From Mytilus edulis (taxonomy: Eukaryota), in the NCBI RefSeq assembly GCF_963676685.1, contig NC_092351.1, forward strand, positions 25,296,001 to 25,360,000: a stretch of 64,000 nt of DNA, written 5' to 3'. The translations under genes were made by a program, and so were the position numbers. Positions within the stretch are counted from its first letter, which is position 1. Each line of letters begins with the position of its first letter. A model generated the notes under the pieces. The model saw only the letters and a program-made list of their open reading frames with translations, was not told the origin of the DNA and did not search any database. Positions 20,815 through 63,879 of this stretch are shown here, piece after piece.

Positions 20815-23800
20815 TTAGGTGTCAAACCCGCTCGAAAGATGCCATGCATTACTTATCCTATCATGTACATACAACTGATTTTGGTAAAGGGCATACTTTG
20901 ACTGTCCAGCTTGATATATTTCCGCCGACTTTGGATCAAAGGGTGTCGGAGTGTTCTCTTTTGATTCTACTGCTGCAGTTTTTGGTCTTTCGTGTTTATA
21001 ATCATATTCTGTGTGTTTTTCAGTAAATGCTGAATGTGGTCTATTGTGATTTCCATGTCGTCCATAACTGCTGTAGTTTTCCGTTGCTGGTTTGTTCGAA
21101 GGTGAATATTTGTTTGCAGATGGAGAAGTATCTATGTTACTCCTTGTATTTGAAGAATACGTCCGATATGGAGAATCCTGAAACATCTCGTTTACACGAT
21201 GATCATTTTTATTTAAACCTGGACGGTCTATTTCTTCGTCATGCCTTTTACGTCGGTCAGTGGTATCATGTTGCTTATGTTGGGTTTCCCTAAGTAGGTC
21301 ATTAAACCTTGTTTCTGTTTCTTTTAATTGATTATGCTCGTATAAGTCCTTTCGTTCAACCTCTTTATTGTGCAATAATCGTTGACGTCTTTCACTTTCG
21401 GACTCTTGACGACCCCTAACCTTCATTTTATCGGTCGAAATGTTTCGTTTTGTTTTAGAGACGGAAGTTGAATATGACCTTTGAATCGGTTGGACAACTC
21501 CTTTTGTAAGAACTGGTCCATCCTTTTCAATCAATAATGGCAGCCAAACAACGAAAGAAACTGCGTCGCCTTGTACGGTAAATTCTTTATAACTATCTTT
21601 GTCATATAGCTCTCCTATTTTTGGAGGTTCATCAAACTCGAGAGGAGGATTATGGGTATTCATCAACCAGCAAATTTCAATACATTTATTTGTATACTCT
21701 GGTAATCTTTCTGCGTACAATGGTTTACGACTGGAAGCCATGTAGGTCTACAACAACAACAAAAAATATCAACATTTAACTGTTTTCCTGTGTATAGTAA
21801 TTGAATGAAAAAAACCGTAAAGAACATAAGTATCACGCGATTGGTGTTCAAATATAATTATATCTGATCTTCGATAATATAGGAATAGGAGATTGAGTCG
21901 ATTTTCATGATTTACCAATCACCAGGAGTACTCAAATCCAAGAATGTATAAGTACTTATTTACTTATTTTTAAGTTTGTTCTTCTGTTGTGACGATTCAG
22001 TCAGATATATGATACAAATGTATGTGTTATTGCTTTTTGTTGAATGCCGTACTATGACATATAGCTTTTTTTTCATCCACATCATTTTGCCTCTGGATTT
22101 TGCCTCTGGATAACATTCCATGGCCATTTCATATATTCTGTTAATACTGGTGCATCGCTCAAGGCAAGGCAAATACATTCGTATGTATAAGATATTTTCT
22201 TATAAGCAATTAAAACAAATATGAAAAATACTCAGAACAAGGTTCGTATGTGTGAACTTAAAATGTTGTTTGTTACGACTGTTGCTACATAAAGCATTTT
22301 CGACGCTTACGAAAATTGGAAACAAATGATTTAAAAAGAACCGGAATGTTTATGTCAGAATTCAATTAGTAAGACATTCTGTTGAGAATAACATCCGGTG
22401 AAAATCTAATATGTATATATTACCCTGCTTATGATAATAGTCATTAAATTGACAAAGAATGACTGGTATTTATCTTACCTTTTGCAAATTAAGAATCACA
22501 CTCTTAGCTTTCAATTTGATACATGTTTCAAGCATTTGCGAAATTTGTTTGTCTTCTCCGCTCCTGGCACTATCTGTGGCATGTCCTATAGAAGATACCT
22601 GAGGACAATAGTAAAGATGTAAAATGAGCAGAACTTACTACAAAAAAAATCGTTGTAGAAAACATAAGTAAACAAGAATGTGTCCATAGTACACGGATGC
22701 CCCACTCACACTATCATTTTCTATGTTTAGTGGACCGTGAAATTGGGGTTAAGACTCTAATTTGGCATTTAATTCAGAAAGATAATATCTTAGACAACAT
22801 GTATACTTATTAGTTTTAAGTTGATTGGACTTCAACTTCATCAAAAACTACCTTGACCAAAAACTTTAGCCTGAAGGGGGACGAACGGACGAACGAACGA
22901 ACAGACGCACAGACCAGAAAACATAATGCTCCTCTACTATCGTAGGTGGGCATAACAAATAATTTGCTGAAGGCAGAAAATATTTTTTAAACGGAAGAAT
23001 GAAGAATGTTCAAAAAGTTCTGATGTGAAAACGTATACGATTGATCTTTGACGCAAAAATATAAAACCGACTGTATGCAAGAAACCGCATGGCTTATATT
23101 ATGTTGGCAACAAAATTATAATTTTTTCCACTGAAAGAACTGCATCGTGTATTATTTTTTATTTTTATTTATAAGGACAATTTTCATCTCTCGTCTGTTT
23201 AGTAGATACAACAAAAATCTTTACAAAGAACGATACATAGTTAGATGGATTATCTGAACTTTTGACCAAAGTAAACCCCTTTGTAACTTCTTACAAACAT
23301 TCTTTCTCTGGTTAAATATGATCTTTAACTGTGACGGTTTTATTCCTTAAGTGGCATCGATCAGATGTGCATTCTTTCAAATTCGAAAGTCTTTTCTAAT
23401 TTTGTAATAACAAGAATGTGTCCAAAGTACACGGATGCCCCACTCGCATTATCCTTTTCCATGTTCAATGGACCGTGAAATTGGGTAAAAAATCTAATTT
23501 GGCATTTCAATTAGAAAGATCATACCATAGGGAACATGTGTACTAAGTTTCAATTTGATTGGACTTCAATTTCATCAAAAACTATCTTGACCAAAAACTT
23601 TAACCTGAAACTGGCATTTTCATTTTCTATGTTCAGTGAACGGTGCAATTTTGGTCAAAAGTCTAATTTGGCTTTAAAATTGGAAAGATTATGTCATAAG
23701 GAACATGTGTAATAAGTTTCAAGTTGATTGGACTTCAACTTCATCAAAAACTACCTTGACCAAAAACTTTAACCTGAAGCGGGACAGACGGACGAATGAA

Positions 23801-26800
23801 CAGACGGATGAACGAACAGACGGTACGACGAACGAACGGACGCACAAACAAAACACATAATGACCCTCTACTATCGTAGGTGGTGCATAAAAATAAAGTT
23901 TAGATGATTCTACGCTCTTCACTTATGCTACTATCAATGCGCAATCGGAATAGTTTAAAATAGTGATTTTATCATTTCCCTCAAAAATAGGATCCGTAGA
24001 TACTAATCAAAATGATGGACTTTTTTATCGATAATATATTTGTGGACTTAAAGAGGTTTATTTTATATTTTTTCAGTCAGTATTCCAATGAGAACCACTT
24101 GTGTAACCCATTGCCCGACTTATTTTTGTACTCATATCACACAAAGTTCTTACTAAATCGGCTCAAATAAAAATAACACGTCTGTATAAGTAAATTATTT
24201 CCACTTTCAGATACTGATGATGTTCACTCGCTCAGTAACTCCCAATTTTGTAGGTGCTTACATCCAGTATGTATCAGTGAACCAAGTCAGGAACCTGTAA
24301 ATGAGTGGTTGTCGTTTGGTTCTGTATTGTCATGTTTGTTATTCGTTAAAGTTTTGACATTGTTACAATTCATCACTGTCAAGCCGCTGAACAAATGGGG
24401 TGTCAATATGTTGAATTGTTTTTGAGAAAAAAAAATGACTTGAATATATGTTGAACGAATGGACGAACGTGGAGATTATAAACAGACCAGGCCACTAAAG
24501 TTGGGTTATGTAAACTGACCAAAACAGGTCAATTGTGTGGATTTCCTAATAAGCAAGCCAATATATTTTTTTAATAAAAAATTCATATGTTAATTTAAAG
24601 GGTCCCACTTTAAAGCTCCTTTGCATACTTTTTCTTGTATGTTAAACTATTCCGATTGACAAATAAAGTACACTTACAGGATTACTTAAAATATTTTCCA
24701 GACTTTGCAATGATTCCATATACGCCCTTTTACAGAATGTACTTGCATGCTGAAAGACAAATATGTTATTTCATATCATGATTACCATTGAAGAGTAATG
24801 CGATACAAAACATAAAGATAATAATTATTTTCACTTCTAGAATTATAATTATTATAAAGAAGCTCTAGCTTGGTCAAATATTACTGATGTCCTTATTAAA
24901 TATACATGGATATACACAGCTAATTTTGCATAGGTACTTTTTCTGTACCATAAATCTGTAGTACTGGAAATCTACTTTTAATATTGAGTACTATTTTGTT
25001 ACTTTAAAATTATTGTAATATTTAGGTATCTGTATTTTACAGTACTTGATTTATACTTGAAATTTAAGTACTACAGATTTTTGGTTTCACGGTTACATTT
25101 TCAGCATTTTGAAAGTTTGACAATTTCTTGATAGAGGGTTACTGCTCACAAGGAAGCTATTATACCAAGAGTTCCAAATGGTGAAGTTGAAATCATCCCT
25201 TCGTAAATTTTACGGACGCCATCACGAGTTGGTTGACCGTTATGGAATAACCGTTTCACAAATGATATCGGATATGTTCCTTACGTCGTAACTACAATCC
25301 CCTTCCCTCTCACGAATGTGACCTACCGAATTAGACTATTTACCGGATTTGTAATCACATAAGCAACACGACGGGTGCCACATGTGGAGCAGGATCTGCT
25401 TACCCTTCCGGAGCACCTGAGATCACCACTAGTTTTTGGTGGGGTTCGTGTTGTTTATTCTTTAGTTTTCTATGTTGTGTCATGTGTACTATTGTTTTTC
25501 TGTTTTTCTTTTTCATTTTTAGCCATGGCGTTGTCAGTTTGTTTTAGATTTATGAGTTTGACTGTCCCTTTGGTATCTTTCGTCCCTCGTTTTTCAAATA
25601 TCATAAAGCTATGATGTTCAAATATGGAATACAGTGATCATTGTTGGTATTATTTATGTACCAATATTTTAAGTACAAATCAAGTACTGGAAATAACAAG
25701 TACCTAAATATTACAATAATTCTAAATTAAAGAAATAGTACTAAATATCAAATATAAAGAAAATTTCAAGTACTACAGATTTTAAGTACAGAAATAGTAC
25801 CTATGCAAAAGAAGCTGTGTAGAAAAAAAAATGGGTTAAGACCTAGCATATATACTATGGTTCATAGTTTGGGCCATAATAATTATAATAACAAAGCTGA
25901 AATTTGGCTATTCTTGTCTTGTCCCTTTCACATTTGGCTCCTAGCATTTCAAAGTATTTACGCATCACTGGCTTTCAAATATTTAAGTTTGCGCGTTCTT
26001 GAAGGTTAATCTAAACAAAAAGCGATTCGGACGAACAAAACATATAAATAGTGTTTTTCATTCACGAATTTTAAATAGCTCTTTATCATCATAATGGAAC
26101 TAAATTATCTTTAAAAAAATTTAGTACTGACCTTTAACAATGTACCCTACTATGCAAATATTGAATTTAACATGTTGTTTGTGCAATAATTTATTTATCT
26201 TTGATTTCATCTCTGTTTTTAAATAGGAACTTTTAAATTACACTAAAGTAGAAATTTGTAAAAACCTTCATAATTTCCAATAAAAATCTGACACCAGCTT
26301 CTTCATCTACACGACCTTCAGTAGTGAGGCTCTCTAAAGCATCTGTCCAGTCATTGTCATACAAATTGTTGTACTTCTCTGCAAGCTTTGTAGATCTGTT
26401 AGGGTCACTAAGGTCAGCAATTCCTGCATTGTTTTCACTTAACTTGCCGCCCATTTCTTTGCTTAATCTGGTTAGATAGGAAACAGTTCGGTTAAATTTG
26501 TATTCATTCATTTATTCAGACTTTCACTTTTTATACTACTGTTGCCATTATTTAACATACGAATTAGAAGAGTAAGAAGCATAGTGATCATAGATCAATA
26601 TGAATGGTACTGCAATAGCAAGCAAACGACATAAAATTTAGAAGAACTATTATACTGTAGTTATGAATAAAAAAATGAATAAAAAAAATGGGGTTACCTT
26701 ACTCGTTTTCATTCTACATGTAAAATAGTTATCAAAGGTACCAGGATTATAGTTTAATAAGTCAGACGCGCGTTTCGTCTACATAAGACTCATCAGTGAC

Positions 26801-29800
26801 GCTCAGATCAAAATAGGTAAATAGCCAAACAAGTACAAAGTTAAATAGCATGAGGACTCAAAATTCCAAAAAATTGTGCCAAATACAGCTAAGATCATCT
26901 ATTCCTGGGATAAAAAAATCCTTAGTTTTTCGAAAAATTCATAGGTTTGAAAACCGAAATTTATAAAAATGACCATATAATTGATACAAACTTTGTATAA
27001 AAATATCATTCTTGTCCTCTTTCCTAATTAATCAAAGATGTAATATTTAAGAATCAATACAAACATTTTTTTTTACCTTATTCTGTATTTCAGTACTATT
27101 ATCATATTAAAGATGTTACATTATCTTTTTTGTTTTTGTATTTTAGCGAAAGTTATGCAAATTAATTGCATTTCTGCATTACCATTACTGTTTAAGTCTG
27201 TATCGTCAAGTTTGGGCCATTGGTGATATAATATTGAGGAATACTATACCATACTATCTGATTGAATACTAAATTTTTATCATATAAATGTAGTAAATAA
27301 ACATTCACGACTAACAGTTGTTCATTTCATCATCTTTTTCTTTTTTGTATATTAAGCTTTTTATAGACAGGAACACATCAACTTTAATTCTTTTGAACCT
27401 TTAGTTGTTTTTTTTTGCTTCAGTCAAACTTGTAAGATTCGATTTTTTCATGCATACACATCGTCTGCGTTTTATAGATTTACAGAGATATATTTTATAC
27501 AAAAGTTTATTAAATGAACATATCAACAGTGCAAAAGAACCTGCTTTTTGAACTAACAAATACAATTGTTTCACTTAACTTGTCGTCGCCCATTTCTTTG
27601 CTTAATCTATAAGAAACAGTTCGGTTGAATTATAATTCTTAACGATTAGAATTATTTTACTATCCAGACAAGTAAGAAGCATGGTGCGCATAGATCAATA
27701 TGACAGGTACTAAAATAGCAAGCCAACAACATAAAATTATGAAGATACGTTATACTTGGAATATCGTATTCCTAAAAGACACTTAGTTTATATCTTGTCA
27801 CGAGTACAAAAAAGTACGAAAATTAAAAAAAAAAAAGTCAAAGATTCAAATGGCCAACAAAATCACGAATGCTGGCATCTGTACATGGAAAATTAGAACT
27901 ATAATTCTGTAGTTATGAATAAAAATATGAAGAAGTTACCATACTCGTTTTCATTCTACATAGATTCTTAAGAATCAATACAACATTTTTTGACTCGATA
28001 AAAAATCATTATCATTATCATTATCATATTAACATATTATATTATCTTTTTTGTATTTCCATAAAAGTCGTGCGAATTAATTGTATTTCTACATCAAAAC
28101 TTGCTGTTTTGCCTGGATCGGTAATTTGAGGCCAGTGGTGATATAATACCGAGGAATACTATACTTCTATTTTATTGAATACTATATTTCTATCATATCT
28201 TGTAGAAAATAAACATTTCTGACTTACTGTCGTACATTTCATCATCTACTTGAATTCTTTTGAACCTTTATTTGGTTTTTTGCTTCGGTAAAACTTGTAA
28301 GATATGAATATTTTAAGCATACACATCGTCTGTGTTTTATAGATTTAAAGAGTTATATGTTCATACAAAAGTTTATTAAGTGAATTTGAACATATCAACA
28401 TTGAATATAGAACTTGCTTTTTCATTTGAAATGTTAACGAACTTATGAAAACTCGAAAACTGTAAGCTTTCTACACAGTTCCTCTAAAAATTACCTGGAT
28501 AATGCGGAATCCTTTTCAGACTTGATATTAGCTAATTCAGCATCTTTTTCCTTCAGACGCATTTTCAATTGTTTAATGGTTTCTTCAGATTCTGTTCTAG
28601 CTTTAAGTTTTGCGTCCTTTATTAACTGTTTTGCTTTAGTTATTATTTCATCTTTAGCATCTACTGCTTCTTGATATTTTTTCATGGATTCATCATTAAC
28701 TTCTTTAAGTGTATTGTATTCCTCAGTTTGTCTCTGCAACTCAGACTTCAGTTGTTCTGTTGATGTGTCCTGTTAATAAAAATTAACAGATCATCTTCTG
28801 TATACCTACTTTCTCCCTATTATTATTTTCAGAAAAGGAAACAGAGGAGGTTTACTATACGTCAATGATAGGACAATCTAATCATGATTACAAACAAGAG
28901 TTGATACATTAAAATATCTCGTTTTCTGTATTATTTGATATATTATAAAAAATCAGTAAAATCTCATGCAGGTGTAACAATATATAATTTGGCTCGTTTA
29001 ATTTTCCTAAAATTTTGGACAAAAATATAAAAAATTCTAAAAATTTGAACCAACCATTTTATCAGAAAAATTACACTGGTTATATAGCAGTTTGACAAAC
29101 ACTACTGTTGATCATTTAGAAGCTTCAACGTAATTACAACGCTTAGCTGATTTTACAGAGTTATCTCCCTGTAGGGTTAGGTACCATAAAAATATGGACA
29201 AATTCAAGTACACACACTACTTAAAATTTTATAACAAAAATCTCTGCATTAAAGTCTGTGGATTTTCTACAAAAAGCTTGGTTTATTTGCCACACAATCC
29301 TGTTTAACTATCAAATGCAATGAAACTATAAATAATAAATTTGAATATGTACAAAATGACCCATCTCTTTTATTTATTATCTTTGCTGTTTTTATACTAT
29401 TGCAGTTTGAAAATTTCGTAATTCAAAGGCTTCAGAAGGGGTCATAAACCTTAAGTAAAATTACCTTCAGAGATGATTCTATTGTATCAATATCAACTTT
29501 CTGTAAATCCTTAACCAACGAAATAAGTTGGTCCACGTTCGAGGATTCTCTTGATGATCTACGTTTCGTTCTGTCATTCTCGATTGTGACATTTGGTGAT
29601 GACTTCTTGTCAGAGGAAAGATAAACCTTTCTCGTCGATGTTATTCGGTCGTGTCTATCATGTTCGTTGGTTTCACCTTCACTAGAAATTGTTGGTGATG
29701 TTTGGTGGTCTCTGGAAAGAACTTCTCTTCTTGTAATAGATTTACTGTGCGTATCAAAACGACTTCTTTCATCATGTGGCGAAGTTGCCCGGTTGTATGA

Positions 29801-29893
29801 AGATTCAGAGCTAGGGCTGAGGAAATCGTATAAATTTGGAGCTCTTCCTGCACCCACGGTTCTGCTGTGTGAATCGTTCCTCTTGTAAGACAT
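20815..29893 (-). CDS. MIEAP (mitochondria-eating protein/SPATA18-type) C-terminal-domain protein, paralog 1, ~676 aa, 6 coding exons
   Basis: Exons 29893-29465, 28769-28495, 26467-26266, 24749-24678, 22598-22479 and 21747-20815, GT-AG, phases 0/2/0/0/0. Disordered N-terminus, coiled coil, then RLS..IADLSDPNRSTKLAEKY..LYDNDWTDALE and KCIEICWLMNTHNPP...VVWLPLL.EKDGPVLTKGVVQP, then a long disordered tail. Confidence 0.8.
22671..22955 (+). mobile_element. HINE/pearl-like non-autonomous element (one core repeat)
   Basis: 5' aacaagaatgtgtcc, core unit, (GACG/AACG)n microsatellite, 3' hairpin cctctactatcgtaggtggg. Confidence 0.65.
23409..23893 (+). mobile_element. HINE/pearl-like non-autonomous element (two core repeats)
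   Basis: Same ends as 22671-22955 with the core unit duplicated, plus microsatellite and 3' hairpin. Confidence 0.65.
24000..24270 (+). mobile_element. Highly decayed Penelope-like RT core fragment
   Basis: Remnants of IKMMDFFIDNIFV, (G)IPM.T.C...DLFLYS and FRY.DDV.SL motifs with frameshifts. Confidence 0.55.
24915..25819. mobile_element. Long-TIR MITE (CACAG termini, TA flanks) containing a Penelope-like 3' fragment
   Basis: ~150-bp imperfect inverted arms (cacagctaattttgcataggtact... / ...agtacctatgcaaaagaagctgtg) flanked by TA. Confidence 0.7.
25125..25594 (+). mobile_element. Penelope-like element 3' end (RT C-terminus plus 3' UTR)
   Basis: FLDRGLLLTRKLLYQEFQMVKLKSSLRKFYGRHHELVDRYGITVSQM*; the following sequence is repeated at ~18400-18545, ~41995-42160, 6598-6710 (-) and 54885-54960 (-). 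Confidence 0.7.
26430..28420. repeat. Diverged tandem duplication (~0.85-1.1 kb) of the paralog 1 intron 2 / exon 3 start
   Basis: Shared blocks: cccatttctttgcttaatct (26450, 27588), gtaagaagcat..atagatcaatatga (26572, 27672), gtggtgatataata (27220, 28135), catacacatcgtctg (27453, 28318). Confidence 0.85.
26761..26800 (-). ncRNA. Minimal type I hammerhead ribozyme in a PLE/retrozyme-type repeat (~26720-27045)
   Basis: Reverse complement reads gtca CTGATGA gtc-ttatgta-gac GAAA c-gcgc-g TC tgac: intact core, GUC triplet, 4-bp stem I, palindromic stem III loop. Confidence 0.75.
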
Positions 29894-45500: not shown

Positions 45501-48104
45501 GTTTGCATTTTATCTCTATCTATAATAATATTCAAGATAATAACCAAAAACTGCAAAATTTCCTTAAAATTACCAATTCAGGGGCAGCAACCCAACAACG
45601 GGTTGTCCGATTCATCTGAAAATTTCAGGGCAGATTTTACCCCTATGTTCTAATTTTAGCCGTGGTGGCCATCTCGGTTGAATGTCAGGGTCACTGGACA
45701 CATATTTAAAACTAGATACCCCAAAGATGATTGTGGCAAAGTTTGGATTAATTTGGCCCAGTAGTTTCAGAGAAGAAGATTTTTGTAAAAGATTACTAAG
45801 ATTTACGAAAAATGGTTAAAAATTTACTAAAAAGGGCAATAACTCCTAAAGGGGTCAACTGACCATTTTGGTCATGTTGTCTTATTTGTAAATCTTACTT
45901 TTCTGAACATTAATGCACTGTTTATGATCGTTTATCTCTATCTATAATAATATTCAAGATAATAACCAAAAACAGTAAAATTTACTTAAAATTACCAATT
46001 CAGGGGCAGCAACCCAACAACGGGTTGTTGGATTCATCTGAAAATTTCAGGGTAGATAGATCTTGATAATCAATTTAACCCGTGTCAGATTTGCTCTAAA
46101 TGCTTCGGTTTTTGAGTAATAATCCAAAAACTGCATTTACCCCTATGTTCTATTTTAGCCCTGACGGCCATCTTGGTTGGTTGACCGGATCACCGGACAC
46201 ATTTTTCAAACTAGATACCCCAATGATGATTGTGGCCAAGTTTGGTAAAATTTGGCCCAGTAGTTTCAGAGGAGAAGATTTTTGTAAAAGTTAACGACGG
46301 ACGACAAAGGACGCCAAGTGATGAGAAAAGCTCATTTGGCCCTTTTGGCCAGGTGAGCTAAATAAATCTACAAAATGATTGAAATATTTATCAAAACGAG
46401 TTGTTATACTTCAATGACAAATATGCTATGTTATATATATAGCACGGCTCTTACGAATTAAGATTTTAATGCATCGAAAACGCGTAGCGTTTGAGTGCAT
46501 TACAAATTTTAATGAGTAAGGCGTGGTTATATATGATTTGTAATATGACCAATGAAAATGCTATATTATACAGACATTAAATATGATAATTATCAAGGCG
46601 TGGCCAAAATGACGTTATTCCCGCTAAAATTCTGCACGAGCTCTTGCCAGTCTGTCTAGAAGCTAAAAATGTCGGGATTTTTTAAGCGACGATGAAGAAA
46701 ACTTTGTCTTCACTCAAATTTCCGAACAAGATGCTACTGGAAGATTTTTAAGATTCATTGGTCGAAACAACAAGACGTTCAAAGTTGGTTTAGGCGATTT
46801 ACGGCTGAATAATAAAGATATCAAACACTATGCAAGAGGTAAGTATACGTATTTAATTTTTTTAATAAAACATGTTTTTAAAACGGCAATTAGCATATCA
46901 CGTTTTATGTATTTTTGAAACAAAAAGAATGACAAAGCCGTGACAAATTTGTTTCAGGCCGCTAAATCGTATAAACTTGTAGAAATCTGAAGACTACCAT
47001 ATTAAAAGCACGTGGTTGTCTTTTATTTTCGCTTTCTCCGTCCGTCCGTTTGTTTGTTTGTCGTACCGTCCCTCAAAAGCTAGTTATTGTGGGCGCTTCA
47101 TCTGAAGAGACAGGACGGGGTTGCTGACTGGTCTATATCATTTTCTGAATCTTCAGCTGTTTCCCATAAAATATTTAAAATTTTGCCGGTGGGAGACCCT
47201 TTCTAACTAATCAGTTGAGTTTTCTAGTTTTTATATTAATTTTAAACTTGTTGATAAATACCACTTGTTATTTCTTTCTGTTTCTATACATGCAACATGA
47301 GTTTAGTGGAGGAAAATACATTTTAAAGTTCATAATTCTTCTTTTGCAGGTCCAAGATGCATAGCTGACTTCTATGAAACATACTTGAAGGCAATTGGAT
47401 CTGGCGTATTTTATCGTAAACCACTTATTTCTGATGTCCAAGATGAGCATCCCTACGGAAAGTCCGCATTACATTATTTGAGTATATTATACGTGTTTTT
47501 TATTATACGTATGCCAATGTCACATACATGTAGTAGTGATTTCAATGAATGATAATATTATGGAAATTATCTGTTTTGGCAATCTTATTTTTTTTGGTCA
47601 TAATTACTTGTTCTGTCAGGAAATAAAATAATTATTATGATTGTCCTACAATGTCCTAATATCGTTTACTATAAATTTGTAAAATGTGTAAAAAATAAAT
47701 TTCTACGTTATTATTTCATGTAATGTTTTTCTTTTTTTCATAAATGACTAAATTACCTGAAAACTTTCGAATGACTTTTGCACTGCATCTAGATCAATGG
47801 CTTGTAGCTTTCTTGCGATTTCCACAAATTGTGCAACGTCTTTATTCTTCGACAAAGGAGGGGGAGTGTAGGTTGAATTCATGTAATCATTACTTGTTGA
47901 ATACCGACCAGTTGATGAAATTCGTTGTCTCAAATTATCTAACGGATTTGGCGAGGTCGATCCTGTACCGTATGGTGACGTCGATCTTGAACCGTATGGC
48001 GACGACTCCGTGTCAACATTAAGATAACTTGGTGTACCAGAAACAGTCCCATACTTTCGACTGGTTCCATACGTAAATGTGTGTGTGAATGGTTTGGAAG
48101 CCAT
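39542..48104 (-). CDS. MIEAP-type C-terminal-domain protein, paralog 2, ~647 aa, 6 coding exons
   Basis: Exons 48104-47757, 44875-44613, 43930-43732, 43056-42985, 41534-41409 and 40477-39542; same intron phases as paralog 1 and an identical 72-nt exon 4 length. Motifs SALSRLSKEMG..DNPAIADLSDPNRSTKIAEMY..IYDNEWTDALE and ELCWLMNMCNPP...VVWFPLLIQENGPVLTKGVAQP. Confidence 0.8.
43385..43426 (+). ncRNA. Variant or decayed minimal hammerhead ribozyme
   Basis: gtgttc CCGATGA aggtaaatcca GAAA a-gcgc-t TT gaacgc: stems I and III pair, but the core has a U4->C change. Confidence 0.5.
45179..46362 (+). mobile_element. HINE/pearl-like element with duplicated ~420-bp core
   Basis: 5' aactagaggctc; internal repeat (caataactcct..ggggtcaa at ~45420 and ~45838; ggggcagcaacccaacaacggg at ~45581 and ~46003); gacg microsatellite; 3' hairpin agctca..tggcc..ggcca..tgagct. 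Confidence 0.65.
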
Positions 48105-51100
48105 CCTAAATATTGAACAATATCATCTTTATGGAATGCAACAACATATAAAACTCCGTATTTTATTCAATCTCGAAAAAACAGCTCGAAATCCCGATGT
48201 GGTTTAGTTGAAACATGTTACATGTATATTACAATTTTGTCCTAACAGAGAAAAATTCTGAATTTCTACATGTGAACACAAAGAGTGCATTTCTTTCTGA
48301 CCAAAACTTTGTAAACGTTATGTGGCATTAGTTGTTGTTTTCTAAACGCTAAAAAAGTAGAATCAAATACATCGTTCAATGAGTGTTTACTGACCCTGTT
48401 TTAACTTCAATAATGCATGCACAAGTTGTTTGAAAGATACTTTTTACAAACGTAGAAACGAATATATCGTTTGATGAGGGTGAAGTTAGAAACAACTGTA
48501 GCGTTTGTTCTAACAAACGATGAACAACAAACTCTAGACGCAATGTTTAGCGAGTGCATACGTTGTCAAAGTTTATGTAAACTTTGCAATCGTATGTTAG
48601 AAACAAAATTTCAATACAAGTGCGCGCTTAGCCGTTTGCATCCGGTTTGTAATAGAAAGAAATTCACCCAAAATCTTCATATGTTACAGTTGCACATGAC
48701 ATTGAAACATTTTGTCCACTAATTAGGGTCTGTTGAAGTTTCCAAAACTTACTTGGTAAAAAAACAAAATATCAGAGAACAAATTATTGGCTAAAGAAAA
48801 ATAGTAGATATTTTTTTTTCCTTTTTCACTTCAAAATAATTAAAATCTGTTAAAGTCATATATAATTCGTTTAGCTCTGTAACTGATTCGATTTATTCGA
48901 CCTCGATTTAAGATAAAAATTCATACAGAATAAAAAATACTAGTAATAAAAAGTGAAAATTGTACTAATCCTTGTCAATTAAGATAATTGCAGACGAGCA
49001 CAACTCGCCACGATGGGCCAGGGATCAACACCATAACCTCAAAGTTAGCAGGCTATATGTTATTCTTGATGGCCTACATGCACTTGGATGTCTTCAACTA
49101 TTCTGTTATCGTATGATATTTCATCGACTTTAAGATTAAAGAAAGAGGATTTAGATAAATTCGTTGACTGATAGTTGTTTTCTTAATGTACAGAGCCAAA
49201 TATTTATGCACCATAGGACGAGGGGAAAAAAATCACAATAAATTCGATGGTTAGAATCTGCAATGTTAAACTGTCTTTTGTAGATCTACCAACATAAAGG
49301 ATGGTTAATTTAGACACGGAAACCAGTAGTAAACATAAGAGACTGACTTAGGTGGAAAGTGGGAGGGAGAGTGTCACCCACCGCCCTCTTGAGCAAACAT
49401 TTGGTTGATCATATAGGGAATAACTGAAGCATGAATGAAGCGACCCCCTATAAGGCAGTCAGTGCCCCCTTTTAAGAACATTACTGGATCCGCCAGTGAA
49501 AAAAATCCAAGATAATCCTGCAAGTTTATTGTTACATCGAAACGAAAGTCATTGAAAGTACATGTGCCAAAATGCTGTACAAAATATTCAACAAAATTAA
49601 ATGTATACATGTACATGATGTAATGTGCTATACAGTTTTTTAGTAAACTTAAGAAACCAATATCCATAAACAAACAAACCTTAAAATTTTACATGTAATA
49701 ATCCCACGAGGAAGTTATTCTCAAATACATGTTCAATATTCTAAAATCACGTGATTCTCAGTATTAGTTTTTCTTATGAACTTGTGCTTAACGTTAATAT
49801 GACAATACAAAAATAATGCATGTATTAATAAATAAATATTAATTGTCTTCAAACATGTCAAATTAAAAGATAGTTTTCATGTATTTATCATGTTTATATG
49901 TGATCAAGTAAATATGTTTAAAATGTCCCTGGACTCAATAAGAAATATTTTTTCGTGTTTCTACATGTTATTATCAGTTAAATGCCTAGTCCACACCTGA
50001 ATTCGTTGTAAATATTCAATCAAATATCCATATCAATATCACACGCATTCCTTAAGACATTTAAACAGGTATTTTAAACCTCTTAAGTGAACAATATCGT
50101 TCTGTATTTTTCTTTTGCAATTTTTACAGATATTTTTAAGATATAAAATACAAATATAGAAACAGGAAAAGCAAGTCTTCAAATTATTATGAAAGACCTC
50201 TAGAGGTATTAATTGAATTGAATTTCTCTATATTCAAATAAGCTGCACTGGGCCTGTTGTTTTACATTATATTATTTTCAAAAAACCGGTCTGAATAATT
50301 GCACAAAATATTTATCATTATTATACATGTTATACATGTATAGCATATAACTTGAAGCCATTGTTATGGTTTTATTTTTTACTTTCCATATTGGTCCCTA
50401 GATATATAGGAAGATGTGATGTGAGTGCCAATGAGACATCTCTCCATCCAAATAACAATTTAAAAAAGTAAACCATTATAGATCAATGTACGGCCTTCAT
50501 CACGGACATTTCTACTCCTGTTTAGCATGTATAGTCTTGAAAACTATATTTATAATTGTATGAACTTTAACTTCATTTTTGATCATATTGATGACATTGA
50601 TCGATATGCTGTTGGTTCTTGGAAAAGAGGATGTTAGTTGGGCAGTAACACTTTGTAATACATCTATGATCAATAAACTAGTAGCCACGAATTACTTGTG
50701 ATCATCCTATGTGAATATATTAAGAACACGTTCAGCACTTCTGTACATTTGAAACGAATTTCTGCAAGATTGTGTAAAATAATTTGTTAATGATCCAATG
50801 AATATATTATTTAAACGTATAAAACTTATGGCATGATTTTTTAATATCAGTTTTTTTTCTAATGTTAATTTTGAATTATGTAAATATGTTATATATGTGT
50901 ATTCATATTATAACATATTACTATCTACCCCGTTGACCCTCAACTGTTGATAGGGGGCAACAAACCGATAAGAGTTTTTAAAAAGCTAGCAAAGTAAGAA
51001 ACTATTTTTAGTGTTCCAAAGTAAGTCATTATATAATAAGCTTCAGTTAACTCATTATCTTGCTTACCTTCAATGTTTAAGATCTATTTCTCCATGTAAA

Positions 51101-51180
51101 TTAGTAAGATGTATAAATGATCATATATTAGTTTTCAATACTTTCTTGTACACTTATGACTGTTGTGTATATTTACATTT

Positions 51181-51230
51181 AAAACCGAAAGTTAAATTCC
51201 AAATACGCATGCGCCGGGAAATGGACAGGT
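51181..51230 (+). promoter_or_regulatory. Candidate promoter / first non-coding exon of the HSPA12 gene
   Basis: IRF-like aaaccgaaagt, NRF1-like cgcatgcgc and a strong donor cag|gtgagg. The HSPA12 ATG exon begins after an acceptor (tttacag ~52952), implying an upstream UTR exon. Confidence 0.3.
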
Positions 51231-53022
51231 GAGGGGTATGTATTTATATATGTTTTTACTTATTTTGTTATAACGGTTGGGTCCAGTACAAAATAAAAGA
51301 ATATGTATGTACATTTCAATTAAATATGCAAATAGTACCTATTTAACCCACCTGGTGGTAGATTGTTGATTGTTACACCAGGAAGTGTTAATAATAGCTG
51401 ATGTACAGAATGGAAACATCCAAAATGGTATTTTGTACTTTCTTTTCAAAAGCAATTCCTCAACAGTATCTTAAAGACTACGTACAATTGTTTAAGTGAT
51501 GTCTGCATACTAAATTTGTAGATCATATTGTACAAATTAGCTATTTTAATTTGAAGAGATGTGACTAGACACGTTCCCCCTTTTTCGTATCACCACCAGA
51601 ATGGTTTCACATCAGTGGCGCATCGAGAGAGAGGGGATTTTCCGCCGTTGGACCCCCTTTTTTTTGACAATTAATGCTTTTGAATGTGGATATATGGTTG
51701 AATCGCACCCCCTTTATCCTGGGCTGGAACAATGTTTTCAGTAAAATGGGTCAGTGGATCTGCCCATGCACACCATTCGCAGTAATAAACAACGAATTTT
51801 TCAAAGTTCTCGGCCTTTTTTTAACTGAATAAAGAGGGGTAAAAAGAAACTGAAGAGTTTTGTTGATTAACATTAAAAAATAGTTCGTTATGATATTTAT
51901 TTAATAATTATAGATAACAGACAATGACAGATAACATTAATTATACCCCATCACTTCGTCCATCATCATTATCTTAAACAAAACCCATAGATCTAACGTT
52001 TGAAACACTGAAAAACGGCATATTTCAATGGAGTATTTAATTCAAGTTCATACTGTTATTATATTTGTTAAATTTTTTTTGTTGATGTGACAGTGACCCA
52101 TTATGATCTTTAGTGAAGGAAATTCCGATTATCGTTTATCGTTGAAACAATGTATGCTTTGTCTGAAACATAATTTCGGGGCAGTAAGACATTTTAATTT
52201 ATATGACTGTTATCTGTTCTACTTACGGTCTTCCTTTCAGGAGGTTATTATGTTAGTTGATCTGCTTTTACAAAAAGAAATTGTCTTTGACTTTATAAAT
52301 AGGTAAAGAGTCCCTTGTATGCCATTTGTATGATTTGTTGATTTTTTGAGTTTTGGGGGTGCCAATGAGACATCTCTCCATCCAAATAACAATTTAAAAA
52401 AGTAAACCATTATAGATCAATGTACGGCCTTCATCATTATTTTACACAATCTTGCAGAAATTCAAATGATTTCACATGTAAATATGTATAACTTTATTTC
52501 ATGATGCATGCAATTGTTTTAACAGACCTTTGGGTTGTTTTCATCAGATCAGCTTGATGTAGAGAATTAGAGCCAACTCTCTTCCCTGCTACGTCTCTGA
52601 AAGAAGTTTTCCTCTCTAAATGCAAGTCTTGATACCTGTTTTTATTTAATGTTTGCTGTCTTGATAACATAGAAATAGTTAAAAGGTGATTCTATGATCT
52701 ATAACATCATGTTTGTTTATAAGAGTGAATGCATCGGGTTTCAAAGGGTCCAAAAAGGGGACTGAGGGGACATCGCTATGTAGGACCGAGGCAGCAAACA
52801 ATAAATAATAAACATGTACAACGTCTATAAAGTACAGCCATAACAGGAGAGAGTCCATAGACCTTTGTTGGAGCTGTTAATAAGAAATATGCATTTTTAG
52901 CAATACTTTTGTAGCTTCTCATTCATAATTTTTATGATGTATCTATTTACAGAATGATTTCTGAAATACAAGTTCGATAAAAATAAAACCAATAAAGGGA
53001 AAAAAAAAAACTATACTTCAAA

Positions 53023-56000
53023 ATGAGTAAAAAGAGTAAAATCCTTGTGGCAGCAATTGACTTTGGAACAACGTTTTCTGGATATGCGTTTTCTTTCAAA
53101 ACTGATTATGAAAATGATCCAATGAAAATCTCCGTCAATCAACAATGGACAGCTGGTTCTAGAAGCTTGATATCACTGAAGGCACCAACTGTTGTTCTGT
53201 TAGACAAATCTAAAAAGTTCCTGGCTTTTGGGTACGATGCTGAAGACAAGTACTCGGAGGCTGCTTTAGACGAAGAACATCTAGATTTTTATTACTTTCG
53301 TAGATTTAAGATGTTACTTCATGAAACAAAGGTAATTATAAAAACGCATTTTCATTAATTTGAAAGATGTTTTATTTGATATATCAAGGAAGGTATATGC
53401 TGACATGCCCCTTAATGCCAATGACTGTAAATTGGGTATGTCTCAGCCTTTTGGTAAAATTTGGCATACAACTTTAGTACTTAGAACTATGACTAAAGAT
53501 AAAAAAAAAATAATGCATCCATCGCTTTTAGTATTTGAAATGTTATTGATTGAATGCTTTTAAAACAGACTGAACATGTTTATAGAAAGCTTATAAAACC
53601 GACGAAAAACGGCTTCCTAAAATCTGTCTTAAAACCGTTAAATATTAAATTTCAAATTCTAAAATCCAAAGATTTTTCTTTGAAACAGGTTGTTTCCTCT
53701 TATCCTCGTTAATTGCAACTTTTTTGTGCACGGTATTATGAACCAATGGATAGCCTATTGAGAAGTTGGACTACATATTATAAGATAAATGTATTTATTC
53801 ACAACTAGGAATGTCATTGCTGAATGTCGCAAGTTTGTTTTTTCTAAGATATCAATTTGCTGAACGTATAAGGGGGGTTGTCTCTGACAGATTTTCTCCA
53901 AATATTATCTTATCCATAGAAATGATCTTGACAGTTTATATAGTTATTTTTATGTTAATTTGCTCCTTTTACAATGTAATTAAAATACCGATCTTTTCCC
54001 TGGCAAGCTTTGTTTACACTGGAGGATCTGAAAAAGCTCCGTTCTATATATTTTTAGACCGTTCGGGATTCTTTCAGTCTGGTTTTGCCGCATCGATCCT
54101 TCAACAAATCTGAAAGCTATAATTGTATTGGCTGATGAAGTAATTACTCCCACAAAAATTTAAACGAAGTGTTGTGAGATCCTTGAAAGCAAAGATTGGA
54201 CTGAGAATCTGTATTTTTAACCTATCTTTAATTTGCTTTATATAATGTTTGAAAATTATATTGTGATTATTCTGCTCATGTTTGTCGCCGTGATTGGCTA
54301 ATAAATGTTTTGTATTTCAATCAGATTGTTTCGTTTAAAGCGATTATCAACTGTCAGATTATCCATTTCGTAAATTTGACGTGCGTTATTCATCAATTTA
54401 TTTTAAAGCATCTTACACGAAAAACGATGATCAAAGACGATAATGGTAAAGAAATGCCAGCTCTAGAAATATTCTCCATGGTTATAAGATATCTGAAGGG
54501 TCATTTGTTAGAAACCCTGGAAACACGAGGAACTGGACTAGATAATAACGACATTCATTGGGTGTTAACAGTCCCAGCTATTTGGACAGAGCCTGCTAAA
54601 CAGTTTATGAGAGAAGCCGCAGAAAAGGTGCAGTGAAATTGTAAACTGATGGGGTTTTGTTTACCAACTTATTTTTACTAATCAAGAGATCATCGTATTT
54701 GGGGCTATTTATTTTAATCAATGTATTTCATATTCATCCATGTGAAAACCCACTTCTGTAACTGCTATTGATTTGTTGACGGAAATGAACACAAAAAAAT
54801 GACAAAAAAAAAAATTTAGATATCCCAACTAGTAAATGGAAGTGCTCTTTTCAAACTTATTTAGCTGACTTAGCAAACGGTTCAAACGAGAGGCGAAAGA
54901 TACATGTACAAGAGGAGCATTCTAACTCATGAGTCAAAAATAAACTAACAACGCCATGGCTACACAAGAAAGTTGTCAATATTTGTATTGGCGCCTTTCT
55001 ACATATAAAATTATGGAGTACGATATGATCGTCAATGGGAAAACTACAAATAAGATTCAAAATAAAAGTGGAATTCATTTCTCGCTACATTGAAGACCTG
55101 TTGGTGACCTTCTGCTGTTTCTACGGTCGGGCTGTTGTCTCTTTGACACATTCCCCATTTCCATTCTCAATTTTATTCAAACTGACAAATATAAGCAGCA
55201 AAACGTTTTGATGATCATATGTGGACATTTCCCCACTTTTAAGTGAAAAACATTACCAGAACGTTTAAACTTTGATAATGATTGGTCATTTTCAAATGCC
55301 TTGTTCTTTGAAAATAAAAAGAATGAAAAGGCAACTTTTTAATTTAAACTAGCGACAACTTGAACATCCTCGTTTTATTTATAGATAGATCTAATACTAA
55401 TAGGATTTCTGGGATATACTTTTTATATCTTCTATACTATCATATCTCGCCAATTTAAATCTAACTTGACTGAAATTATGCTTGCTTTTTTTAATTTAAT
55501 TCAGGTCTTATAACTATTTGTTGCTAAGTAAGACATCAAAATTATCAAATTTCATGTCATTATTAATTTATGGTATATTTTTTTTTTTAAACTTTAATTG
55601 GAAGATAAGTATGAGATCTTAAGCATGTTTAAAAACAATCCCTCTCTTCCTTGTTGATGCATGGCGTCAATGATGGTACAATGTGAAATTGAGAATGGAA
55701 ATGGGGAATGTGTCAAAGAGACAACAAGCCGACCAAAGAAAAAACCCAACAGCAGAAGGTCACCAATAGGTCTTCGATGTAGCGAGAAATTCCCGCACCC
55801 GGAGACGTCCTTCAGCTGGCCCCTTAACAAAAATGTATATGTTTTCAAGGGTATATTTTGATTTTATCCTTGAATCAATGTGAATTAAAACTACTCGGGA
55901 TAAAATATGAGGGATCCTTTTGTCAACTCGTTATTAGCCATCGGTATTGTTACAAATGACAGCACGGCACCACCAGGGAGCTTGTAATGTAATCTGTGTT

Positions 56001-57966
56001 GGTTAAATGACTTCATTTCTTTAACTGGCAAAGAGTGCTTTAGTGTCCGAAGAAAACATATATACTGACGTTGGCGAAACAAGTTGACCTAAACGTTAAT
56101 AATAATTGATTATCTATTTTAAATATATTCTAAGAACGTGCATCAGATATTTGTCCAACACCAAACTAAATAATCTTTATTATTGCCATTTGTTAATTTA
56201 GGCTGGTATTAGTGGAGAACAGCTTAGCATATGTTTGGAACCCGAAGCAGCATCCTTATATTGTCAACATTTACCAATAGAAAAACTTAAAGATAAGGAC
56301 GGTATAGGCAATGAATTTACAGCATCCGGAAGAGGGGCTAAATACATGGTTCTTGACTTGGGAGGTATGTTAGATTAAAGTTAAACATACATGTTCTGTC
56401 TTCTTTATATTGGCTTTACTTTATGAACTATCAGAATCATTTTTTGAACGGGAACAATTTATTCAGACCTGTTCCCCCCCTCCCCCCCCCAAAAAAAAAA
56501 CCCACATAAAATAGCGAAGATAACAATTAACTATGGTACGTCAAACGAATTCTAGTAAAGTGTTTTAATATAATAAATCGTAATTTTTGTCGAAAAAACT
56601 GTATCTAGGCTAGTAATAATATTATGCTAATTATTCCGACGATATATAGAACATACAATATAACTCTTATTCAGAATCGAAATAATTGATGCAAACTATA
56701 CTTTATTGTAGTTTAAAGATGGGTGGGCAGTATACGGTATTTTATACGGTATTTTATAGCTTGCTATCTGTTATGAGCTTGAAGACTGTACGGTAACCTA
56801 CAGTTGCTAACCTCTTACGAAATTTAAAGGTGGAGAGATTTATTGACGATCATACCGCATCTCTCCTTATTTTTATATATACTTTATAAAACTGACATGT
56901 AGAAAATATGATTTCAGGTGGAACAGCTGATATAACATGTCATCAGAAGGATGCCGAGGGTAGCCTCCGAGAATTACAGAAACCAAGTGGGGGTTCGTGG
57001 GGTGGCACACGTGTAGATGAAGCTTTTAATCAGCTTCTTATTAAAATTGTTGGTGGACATCATTTTAGAATTTTTCAAGAGAAAAACAAAGCTGATGCAT
57101 TAGATATCTTGAGGGAGATGGAAACAAAGAAAAGAAACATTACAAACGAAACCGAAGGAAAAGTCACGTTAAAAGTCCCTGTTTCACTAATTCAATCATT
57201 TGAAAAAGAAACGGGAGAGGAAATCAAAGAAGTTATAAAACAGATGGCATACGCAGGCAAAATGACTTGGGTCGGAGACAAGTTACGAATGGAGGCCAAT
57301 CTTTTCCGTGCATTGTTCAATGATCCAAAGACCAATTTGGTAAACCACGTGAAGGCTTTAATGACTAAAGGCCCTTTAAAAGATGTAAGCACGATATTAA
57401 TGGTCGGAGGTTTTTCCGAGTCTCCCATAATGCAGTCGGCAATTAAAGATGCGTTTCCGGGCAAGAAAGTCGTCGTTCCAGATGAAGCTGGGTTAGCTGT
57501 GTTGAAAGGTGCCGTTATGTATGGGCATCAACCACAAACAATTTCCGTCAGAATATCGAGATATACATATGGAATAAACATTTCTCCGCCATTTAAATCC
57601 GGTGAACATTCACCAGAAAGGCGTGTTAGCATTGAAGGTACAGACAGAGTAAAAGACGTTTTCAAGAAATACATAGAAGCCGACCAAACACTAAAAGTTG
57701 GCGAAGCTGTTAGTGGCCGTCATGTCACAATAAAGAAACGCCAAAAAGAAATGCTTTTAAAGATATTTGCAACTGAAGATAGTAATCCTAAATATGTCAC
57801 AGATAAAGGATGCGAGTATTTGGGAAAGGTTGTCATTCAGCTACCGGAAGTGGACGAAAAACTCAAAGTTGACGTGAAAATGATTTTTGGAGAAACTGAA
57901 CTTATGGTTGAAGCTAAGGAATCGACCACTGGTTCTACATACAAATCATTCTTTGACTTTTTGTAG
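53023..57966 (+). CDS. HSPA12: Heat shock 70 kDa protein 12-like (atypical Hsp70), 579 aa, 4 exons
   Basis: Exons 53023-53331, 54409-54627, 56202-56364 and 56918-57966, in frame. Motifs VAAIDFGTTFSGYAFS, WVLTVPAIW..AKQFMREAA, LEPEAASLYC, VLDLGGGTADIT, SGGSWGGTRVD, MVGGFSESP, AVLKGAV and FGETEL; no EEVD or lid. Confidence 0.95.
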
Positions 57967-60888: not shown

Positions 60889-63844
60889 AAAAGTGCCAGT
60901 AGTGCATCTTCAAAATCAAAGCGGTCGGCAATCATTAGACTCTTGAGACAAGTCAAAGATGCATACACTATTGACAAGATCAAGCAGGCTAAAGGGGAGT
61001 ATGAAGGTCTACTGGCAGCGGATCAGCGCTTTCAAGTTTACCCTGGGAAAGTTAGTTGTATATATGTGATGTAATAAAATAATAGAATTAAACGTTCAGA
61101 TATATGCATTTATTGACTATAAATGTCGGATGAAATTCTGAAGAAATTTTGCTATAATAGTAATTACTCCCTCTTCAATGTTGTTTAAACAACACGCATT
61201 TGTTTAATCATTTGTATGCATCATAAGCAGGTGACAACAATGAGACAGCAACCCGTCAACCAAGATTATAAGAAATCAGCATATATATGTCTGCAAAAAT
61301 GCATATGAACATGTGTCTACCAAAATATTTTATCACATGTTATTCATATAAATTTAGTACTTAATATTTATTTTCATCTAGGAACTCCTAGCTGTAGAGA
61401 AGCAGGATGTGGACAGGATTGAAGCATTAGCTCCCTTGCAGAAACATGCCAATGTTCTATATGAAATGTTAACCACAGATAGAAACGGTGTTCCCGTACA
61501 GAAAGAAGCACAAGACGAGCTGTGTCGACTCCTGGTAGTAAAGGAAGCATTTGATCTTATTTCAGCAAAACAGGTTAACAATTCAATCAATTAAATTATG
61601 TTTGTTTACTTACAACTTCGTTGATCATTCTTGATGCCGAAATTTTCTCGTTTTCAGGTAGGGTCTCCTGTACATGCAATATAGTAGGAAGTGGGTTTTT
61701 CCCCTTTTGTTTGGGGTGTAGTTTTGCAGATGGGTTGGTCAGTTTGGAGAGGCTACCGAATGTATAATTGTGGCGTAGTAATAGTGTATTCCAGGCTATA
61801 AACTGAGTCCCAATAAACTAGAGATTGTCTTTTTATAGCTTGTATATGCTTGCTCTGGGTATCAATTTCGTTCCGTGTGTGCTATTCATTCACAATCCAA
61901 ATCTTCGGTTACCACTATTGAATTAGTTAATTAGTTAGCATAAAATGAAAACCCATACCCATAAGGTTAACACTGATTAACACTATTATTATCATGATGA
62001 TTAGAATATGTTTAGTTATTAAAACAAAGCAGATAATTGCACGATAAATCTGTTATAGCTAGACGAAAAGAAGCGGTCTCGCTTGTGTGAGTTACCAGAT
62101 ACTGTCACTATACCATTAGAAGACTATGAAGACATGAGGAGAAAAATGAGACTTCAAAAACTAGAGCTCGATGAATTAAATTCTAGGTAGTGTAACATTT
62201 CAAATTAACTCTATAAGTAATCACATGAAGAAAATTTATCTCATTGGCAATCAATTTAAATCTTTAAATTCGATTTTATTACATATAGTAGAATTTTGAA
62301 ATGTTAAGTATTTCGGGTCACAAATAAATATTTCAGTATAATTATGTAAAGGATATTTAATGAATGCATAACATATAACAAATAATCTTTAGTGCATAAA
62401 ACATTAGTTCTTATTAAATTGTGCTTTAAGATAACATTTATGTAACATAAATTGAATCACAGCATTATATTATTGGCTCATTCGAGTCTACCTAGTCATC
62501 AAATGTGACGTAACTATAAAGCTGTTTTATATTTACATATTAAGGTCGAGTAGAAGACAACACCACGGACAATACCTTGAACTTGGTACTAGTAACCCAA
62601 TACGACCTACAAGAATAGGAGATATGTATGATGGTTTGTTTGACATACAATGGCACGAAGCACTGCCAGTAGTAATGGGACTGTATCCAGAAGAATCAGA
62701 AGCATTTATATTTCTAAGAGACTTGCTATTGGTATGGTTTCCATTAAGAAATAACCCTGCGATTTCAAATACATTTTGGTTATTTGTATGATATTCGATT
62801 GTATATGTAAACAAAGGGAAGATAAAACCATAACTCTGTACACAAATAAAATTAAAACAAGTTTAATGGTGAGATGCTCAATACTGATGCCCGCTATATG
62901 TGTTAGGTTAAAATAAAATTTAATGAGTGATAAACGTGAACATGCACAAGGGCAGATACATTTTTAAAAGGGGGTTCTAACCTTATGTCCCCATTCAAAC
63001 GCATTGGTCGTCCAAAATAATGGGGTTGCAACCCGCGTACTCCTCTTGGATCCGCCACTGTTGCATACTGTGGTAAAGTATTACCACAAGAAGCTTACTT
63101 TCAAGTTTCAGGAATCTCTGAATTATAGTTCATTAGAAAAATGCGACAAAAAGTTTATTGGACAGAGGGATAAACATACGAAAGAAAAAAAAAGACCAAA
63201 AAAACTAATGATTTTATAAAACGGACGCCATCTAAACCAATGTAGATATGTGCATCAGAAGGGAAAGCAAATTAAGAACCACTAAAGACACCCGACCGTT
63301 TGATCGTGATCAGGATTAAAAATTCAGTGTTTGAAAAACCGATAAAGCTATGCACACTTACAAAATGTGGAAAGGAAATAACATTATTTTAACAAAAAGA
63401 ACCGAAAATCGGTAAGACCAGACTGAAAACAGATTAGACTTATAGCACGAGGAGGAAAGCAGACCAATAAATGTTACACCTTTCAAAACAAAGACATGAT
63501 GTGTCATTTGTTAACAAAAGAAAATAGAACATCTATTATATTCATTTTATGACACAGGTTATATAACATTGGTTAAATGACTGGTCATCAGTCTAGTAGT
63601 TATTCATTCTTTTTTCATATGAAACATGAAGTGAAAGTCACAAAAACACTTTTACTAAATTTAAACAGATACGCTTATACAAATCTTATATTTTCAATCT
63701 AGTAAGGAAAAGGTATCCATTTAATGTGTTTTCATTTAGAAAGCCTACGACTTTAGTTCAGACATTGCCAGAGACGAGCAGGAGAAATTGGTCAGTCATC
63801 TTAATAAATCTGTTTTAGAACCTACCTTACACATGGAAGGACAG
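60889..63844 (+). CDS. Divergent MIEAP-type paralog 3, partial (start exon uncertain; 3' exons beyond window)
   Basis: Exons 60889-61050, 61382-61573, 62059-62186, 62545-62731 and 63740-63844 splice in frame. LELDELNSR|SSRR..SNPIRPTRIGDMYDGLFDIQWHEAL..EESEAFIFLRDLLL|KAYDFSSD parallels SALSR|LSK..SDPNRSTKLAEKYNNLYDNDWTDAL..EEAGVRFLLEIMK|HASTFCK, with the same intron phases (2, 0). Confidence 0.7.
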
Positions 63845-63879
63845 GTAAGGGTCATTTACACATGACATAAATAATGAAT

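Follow-up and report, generated by a model that had tools for sequence, protein, structure and literature searches.

HSPA12 beside MIEAP-domain genes in Mytilus edulis: a candidate GrpE-like chaperone partnership

HSPA12 proteins are described in a 2026 review as Hsp70 derivatives of unknown function whose mechanism has had no test, and no dedicated co-chaperone is known for any of them (PMC13580251). For Mieap, binding of cardiolipin-related lipids by the C-terminal region has been proposed and formation of condensates described, while Hsp70 and chaperones go unmentioned (PMC10845071). Expansion of the HSP70 and Mieap orthogroups ranks among the largest in bivalves, and the earlier link between the two families was a loose idea of cell-damage handling only (PMC8382680). 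Our search of the literature on Mieap together with GrpE, HSPA12 or Hsp70 found no physical link. We know of no fold or biochemical activity assigned to the MIEAP domain. Here we describe a locus of the mussel Mytilus edulis (genome of 1.37 Gb), the 64,000-nucleotide window C8:25296001-25360000 of chromosome C8, in which a single HSPA12 gene stands head-to-head with a gene for a MIEAP-domain protein and is accompanied by two further MIEAP paralogs. We propose that the MIEAP domain is a GrpE-like binding module controlling nucleotide exchange on HSPA12, a reading to which we give a probability of about 0.45.

The HSPA12 gene (protein P0325) and MIEAP paralog 2 (protein P0340) are divergent, with 4,919 bp between their ATGs; paralog 1 follows paralog 2, likewise on strand -, and a diverged paralog 3 lies downstream of HSPA12 and runs past the window end. 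The arrangement was determined from six-frame open reading frames (ORFs), Pfam scans and RefSeq proteins, and it reproduces the positions and orientations given in the original prediction, an earlier reading of this stretch which had proposed a dnaK/grpE-like partnership between HSPA12 and its MIEAP neighbours. That no other protein-coding gene lies between them was likewise borne out, as no further ORF of at least 80 amino acids with a Pfam match was found between the four genes. Two of the gene models are fixed by the RefSeq proteins P0325 and P0340, which were used for the full-length analyses, and paralogs 1 and 3 were delimited by exon-by-exon searches, which left the middle exons of paralog 1 unplaced.

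HSPA12, the MIEAP fold and their predicted complex

P0325 matches the Pfam HSP70 family (PF00012) with 45.7 bits (E 3.6e-12) and aligns to the DnaK ATPase domain with an hhalign probability of 98.3% (E 1.2e-14). It retains the phosphate and catalytic motifs of Hsp70 (D13, G15-T17, E189, D228, G230-T233 and D235), nucleotide turnover is therefore plausible, and the protein is probably an active Hsp70-type ATPase lacking the canonical substrate-binding lid. Its orthologs across bivalves, named HSPA12A/B-like, are 50-99% identical (50-65% in scallops, ark clam, unionids, Mya, Mercenaria and Dreissena), whereas the closest M. edulis paralog is just 45% identical; the window HSPA12 is therefore older than the Mytilus lineage.

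For the MIEAP domain two AlphaFold models were compared with solved structures. The single-exon domain of locus L002, modelled from a 123-sequence alignment with a mean predicted local distance difference test (pLDDT) score of 88.5 and a predicted template modelling score of 0.86, is built of five helices and, after them, a beta head of six strands. In the P0340 model a disordered N-terminus leads into a helix of 93 residues (124-216), and the MIEAP domain (229-424, pLDDT >90) is followed by a disordered tail. The order of long helix, helical bundle and small beta head, which the original prediction had read from the letters, is thus seen in high-confidence models. Foldseek searches of 350,542 PDB chains, which that prediction had suggested, placed GrpE/GrpEL1 at the top for both: with the L002 model ranks 1-9 were all GrpE/GrpEL1 from five species at weak E values (0.088-0.8), and with the P0340 model ranks 1-10 were all GrpE/GrpEL1, the best with E 0.016 and probability 0.89. 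Furthermore VIA-align, used independently of Foldseek, ranked GrpE 3-5 among 48,161 chains, as the sole top matches extending over helices and beta head alike. With two aligners and two models GrpE comes out reproducibly as the closest solved fold to MIEAP, which is not proof of homology. The MIEAP alignment profile gave coiled-coil noise only against solved structures, and the look-alikes of the domain without PF16026 in the ESM Atlas were sub-threshold plant and bacterial clusters only.

In the same P0340 model, residues 623-644 (window 39545-39620, strand -) form a confident three-strand end (pLDDT 85-89) after ~200 disordered residues, which Foldseek pairs with WW domains at a probability of up to 0.72. 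Locus L002 itself (2279-4612, strand -; C2:4.59 Mb) is a single-exon gene whose product of 777 amino acids combines a B-box zinc finger and a coiled coil with MIEAP at its C-terminus, TRIM-like with MIEAP replacing the target-binding domain, and this architecture is common to many Mytilus relatives. In addition, P0184, a protein of 1017 amino acids recorded for 'Candidatus Endonucleobacter bathymodioli', carries at least three MIEAP domains; this bacterium parasitises deep-sea mussels inside the nucleus, and the domain was possibly acquired from the host.

Co-folding of P0325 with residues 196-425 of P0340 as a MIEAP monomer, paralog 2 being the sole paralog used, gave interaction prediction scores from aligned errors (ipSAE) of 0.77, 0.77 and 0.76 in three runs, against 0.00 for the best control. 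The runs share at least 96% of their 117-120 contacts, with a partner pLDDT of 84. On calibration, 51 of 78 solved complexes attained the co-fold mark, compared with 2 of 108 mismatched pairs (39 of 65 and 2 of 126 for eukaryotes). Direct binding of the MIEAP domain to the HSPA12 ATPase domain is thus predicted. On the MIEAP side the modelled contacts comprise residues 202-249, which hold an invariant motif and helix 1, and the beta head at 387-395 and 409-420. Across 123 family members this interface exceeds the remaining domain in conservation (2.75 vs 1.68 bits, p 5e-9), and 10 of the 25 most conserved MIEAP positions fall within it, although it makes up 19% of the residues. On the HSPA12 side the contacts correspond, through the hhalign alignment, to DnaK residues 2-35, 130-135, 258-299 (subdomain IIB) and 369-378; Buchberger et al. 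in 1994 reportedly found DnaK loop 28-34 to be required for GrpE binding.

On the exchange reading the locus would be an old chaperone/co-chaperone gene pair inside a tandem MIEAP array. The invariant motif ADLSDPNR...YDNEWTDA would dock on a hairpin of HSPA12 lobe I and helix 1 together with the beta head on subdomain IIB, with the MIEAP domain spanning the nucleotide cleft. The most likely outcome, we infer, would be a control over nucleotide exchange, for which we favour acceleration of the GrpE type, and the coiled coils, B-boxes and tails that diversify MIEAP proteins on the N-terminal side could act as adaptors as in the BAG proteins of Hsp70.

Linkage of the two families, domain fusions and rival explanations

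The three MIEAP genes flanking HSPA12, which the original prediction had treated together with it as a candidate module, are present, and they form the left border of a MIEAP array of 22 genes (C8:25.317-25.697 Mb). The genome holds at least 89 MIEAP matches, with 72 distinct genes on C8, and for HSPA12 at least 115 of 211 candidates gave scored matches, C8 carrying 40 of these. One HSPA12 gene within a MIEAP array could be due to chance, and permutations were therefore run, counting independent HSPA12-MIEAP loci within 20 kb on C8. Four such loci were observed, the other three being at 28.92, 88.38 and 14.31 Mb, vs 0.58 expected from circular shifts of the MIEAP positions (p 0.003) and 0.6-0.7 expected from local shifts that keep regional co-localisation (p 0.001-0.015). 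Adjacency on C8, which the original prediction had wanted compared with random, is hence about six-fold enriched over chance.

In other species the neighbourhood was inferred from accession or locus-tag order, calibrated on the window, where the physical neighbours P0340 and P0325 carry consecutive XP numbers. Within the genus the pair recurs in M. trossulus (MIEAP XP_063415308, HSPA12 XP_063415310/11) and M. galloprovincialis (VDI15869 and VDI15870). The order also points to the same pairing in a scallop, a freshwater mussel and an ark clam: Mizuhopecten yessoensis (MIEAP OWF51198/9 and HSPA12 OWF51205 on one 476-kb scaffold), Sinanodonta woodiana (ACJMK2_031001 and ACJMK2_031003/4/6/7) and Tegillarca granosa (KUTeg_025021 and KUTeg_025016). 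As a rough estimate, the chance probability of each of these three non-Mytilus cases is ~0.002, for genomes that we take to hold 25,000-40,000 genes. Proximity in two large, tandemly expanding families might nevertheless be fortuitous, with the GrpE likeness reflecting a common helix-plus-hairpin and the co-fold being a false positive. Against this speak the permutation values, the distance of 2-7 gene models between the best-matching members in three other bivalve orders, the existence of the fusion genes described below, the top rank of GrpE with two aligners and two models, and a co-fold mark reached by just 2 of 126 unrelated eukaryotic pairs, and we consider such a coincidence very unlikely.

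HSPA12-like ATPase and MIEAP sequences are also joined in single genes. At C11:43.505 Mb two ORFs lie in one frame with one stop between them, the first homologous to the HSPA12 N-terminus (E 2e-19) and the second comprising an HSPA12 IIA segment (E 2e-7) and, after it, an entire MIEAP domain. It belongs to a cluster of three or four fusion copies (C11:43.505-43.563 Mb), some with in-frame stops. Intact or annotated fusion proteins are P0179/P0323 (CAG2214437) and P0174 (XP_071140034) in M. edulis and P0177 in M. californianus. P0179 is just 26% identical to the best C11 copy, and its own gene was not found in this M. edulis assembly; it may be a presence/absence variant. Among ~250 MIEAP proteins sampled, no fusions were found outside Mytilus. 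The ATPase domains of the fusions have degenerate phosphate-binding motifs, and the fusions therefore argue for physical association and not for catalysis or exchange.

This feature fits a different explanation, in which MIEAP binds HSPA12 but has no exchange activity, as an adaptor to MIEAP assemblies or condensates, a Hip-like stabiliser of a nucleotide state, or a regulated partner or client of HSPA12. What the co-fold supports is binding only, its pairing of elements is unlike that of GrpE with Hsp70 (PMC11685456), the ATPase domains of the fusions seem catalytically dead, MIEAP architectures with B-boxes, coiled coils and tails are adaptor-like, and human Mieap drives condensates (PMC10845071). 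However, the closest fold is that of an exchange factor and the contact surface over lobe I and IIB is typical of cleft-opening factors, and we regard binding without exchange as unlikely.

Several further observations weigh against the exchange reading itself. The original prediction had aligned the end of the MIEAP domain by eye to the GrpE head, and this does not hold at the sequence level: the MIEAP profile compared with 19 GrpE sequences gave an hhalign probability of 1% (P 0.054), non-significant in local, greedy and global modes, and no match to Pfam GrpE (PF01025) was found in the MIEAP proteins scanned. Locally, hhalign matched only a G..FD...aromatic motif where the beta domain begins, which is the topologically equivalent place. 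In the GrpEL1-mortalin structure the beta wing contacts IB and the short helices IIB (PMC11685456), whereas in the prediction the MIEAP beta head contacts IIB and the N-terminal motif lobe I; the docking of the beta head on IIB that the original prediction had envisaged is thus predicted with a strong ipSAE, but the pairing of elements is not that of GrpEL1-mortalin. HSPA12 interface residues are no more conserved than the rest of the ATPase domain (p 0.89), and the co-fold score may partly be model memory of GrpE-like complexes. On the genomic side, most HSPA12 and MIEAP genes are not neighbours (on C8 ~5 of 40 HSPA12 and ~5 of 72 MIEAP genes are), synteny in other species was read from accession and locus-tag order, and Ylistrum and Mya show no HSPA12-MIEAP proximity by accession. 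The degenerate motifs of the fused domains and the published lipid-binding model for the C-terminal region of human Mieap (PMC10845071) count in the same direction. The partnership idea is nonetheless supported by four independent kinds of evidence, namely cross-order linkage, domain fusion, a strong co-fold at a conserved surface and GrpE as the nearest fold. What the original prediction had proposed as a dnaK/grpE-like pair is thus partly supported, and falls short in likeness to GrpE in sequence and in the GrpE-type pairing of contacts.

Transcription and gene models at the locus

The same libraries contain spliced transcripts of both HSPA12 and paralog 2. In raw M. edulis RNA-seq reads exon 1 of both genes is covered in the same two runs, with low coverage for both in a third; RNA contigs stop exactly at the splice sites 47757 and 53331, and a spliced HSPA12 contig runs from 53331 into exon 2. 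The start sites, placed by probable upstream untranslated exons, are ~1.5 kb apart (Table 1). Such closely spaced divergent starts, expression in the same runs and the conserved linkage would also suit an old pair of neighbours co-regulated from a shared promoter in a stress or immune role, whose proteins make no direct contact. Orientation however differs between the four M. edulis loci, being divergent at two and convergent at the others, and the fusions, together with a co-fold of 0.77 vs 0.00, point to physical association; co-regulation of this sort appears improbable to us, if somewhat less so than chance. Between the genes, very deep RNA coverage was observed at 50404-50506, inside the putative promoter region, and at 52284-52474, where most reads continue into unlike sequence; these two stretches look like a dispersed, transcribed repeat.

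The identity of the MIEAP genes was assessed with Pfam MIEAP (PF16026, cut-off 27 bits) and a family hidden Markov model (HMM). P0340 scores 52.2 bits (E 1e-13), and the last exons of paralog 1 (32.7 bits alone) and paralog 3 (34.5 bits, at C8:25361262-25361477) are above the cut-off as well. HMM matches were obtained for paralog 1 with E 5.8e-32, 4.9e-31 and 0.01 and for paralog 3 with E 3.3e-6 and 2.4e-21. Paralog 1 contains the motif ADLSDPNR...YDNDWTDA, and both domain-end peptide strings quoted in the original prediction were located in last exons. By tblastn, P0340 is 75-100% identical to the paralog 2 segments (97-100% in 4 of 6 exons). P0325 is 99-100% identical to three HSPA12 exons, and the value of 78% for exon 2 arises because the BLAST segment overruns the splice sites. 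Paralog 3 begins ~61409, 3.4 kb past the HSPA12 stop, close to the ~3 kb predicted, but its C-terminal MIEAP exon lies outside the window. Just past this gene there is a tandem repeat with a unit of ~15 codons and overlapping ORFs on both strands (L001 7259-7703, window-equivalent 67259-67703).

Table 1. Features of the HSPA12-MIEAP locus (window coordinates unless indicated) and of the fusion genes on C11.
Feature	Position	Strand	Basis or remarks
MIEAP paralog 1	20815..29893	-	Exon 1 ORF 29432-29893; coiled-coil exon ~28494-28766; last exon 20815-21741
Paralog 1, MIEAP N-part	26251-26481	-	Family HMM
Paralog 1, MIEAP C-part	21484-21741	-	In last exon; low-complexity tail comes after
MIEAP paralog 2 = P0340 (XP_071125506/7, 647 amino acids)	39545..48104	-	Six exons
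Paralog 2 exons	48104-47757, 44878-44612, 43935-43726, 43086-42979, 41534-41391, 40486-39545	-	tblastn
Probable 5' untranslated exon of paralog 2 (tentative)	49228..49700	-	RNA reads; 2 reads join ~49679 to 48081
Putative shared divergent promoter region of paralog 2 and HSPA12, ~1.5 kb	49701..51137	.	Flanked by the outermost exons with RNA support
Probable 5' untranslated exon of HSPA12 (tentative)	51138..51235	+	51235-to-53026 joint, 4 RNA reads, two runs
HSPA12 = P0325 (XP_071125508/9, 579 amino acids)	53023..57966 including stop	+	Four coding exons
HSPA12 coding exons	53023-53331, ~54364-54663, 56202-56366, 56911-57963 (57966 with stop)	+	Match to P0325
MIEAP paralog 3, 5' part	61409..64000	+	ORF 61409-61594; MIEAP N-part 62591-62731, diverged motif
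Paralog 3 last exon, outside window	Window-equivalent 65232-65498 (L001 5232-5498)	+	ORF; MIEAP C-part 65247-65474
ATPase::MIEAP fusion	L004 383-2410 = C11:43505882-43507909	+	ORF homology
Further fusion copies	L006 and L007, C11:43.524-43.563 Mb		Tandem cluster

Comparison with known chaperone systems

If the exchange reading is true, HSPA12 gains its first co-chaperone, and a direct GrpE-like partnership explains the joint expansion of both families in bivalves. Two unexplained co-expanded families would thereby gain a testable shared function, and a chaperone link would be suggested for the p53-inducible human Mieap/SPATA18. The broadest form of the idea, in which the MIEAP domain is an ancient diverged relative or a single-chain analogue of GrpE and all animals use MIEAP proteins as the dedicated exchange factors and adaptors of their HSPA12-type Hsp70s, human Mieap/SPATA18 with HSPA12A/B among them, we regard as doubtful; the parallel growth of the two families in bivalves would in that case be a paired diversification of chaperone and co-chaperone.

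Compared with GrpE/GrpEL1, the modelled MIEAP protein shows the same order of elements, a long helix, bundle helices and a small C-terminal beta domain, and in both a G..FD motif opens the beta domain; bridging of both lobes would be common to GrpE-Hsp70 and the predicted MIEAP-HSPA12 complex, which does not imply the same geometry. In contrast, there is no significant sequence similarity, MIEAP is ~120 residues longer, its invariant N-terminal motif is not found in GrpE, and its four or five bundle helices would lie in one chain, whereas GrpE is a homodimer, 2:1 in its complex with Hsp70, whose four-helix bundle is built from two. With BAG-domain co-chaperones MIEAP proteins would share a working likeness, a conserved C-terminal ATPase-binding module with varied N-terminal parts that would steer the chaperone to separate tasks, in many paralogs, but the BAG fold, a three-helix bundle, is unrelated and no homology is claimed. 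Human Mieap/SPATA18 carries the same Pfam domain (PF16026) after a coiled coil as the three paralogs of the window, and the bivalve family differs from it in its tens of copies per genome, its extra architectures (B-box, ATPase fusion, tails) and, at this locus, a conserved HSPA12 neighbour. Finally, the HSPA12 gene of the window resembles HSPA12A/B in having clear bivalve orthologs and in keeping the catalytic motifs; no dedicated co-chaperone is known for the established members, and this locus proposes one.

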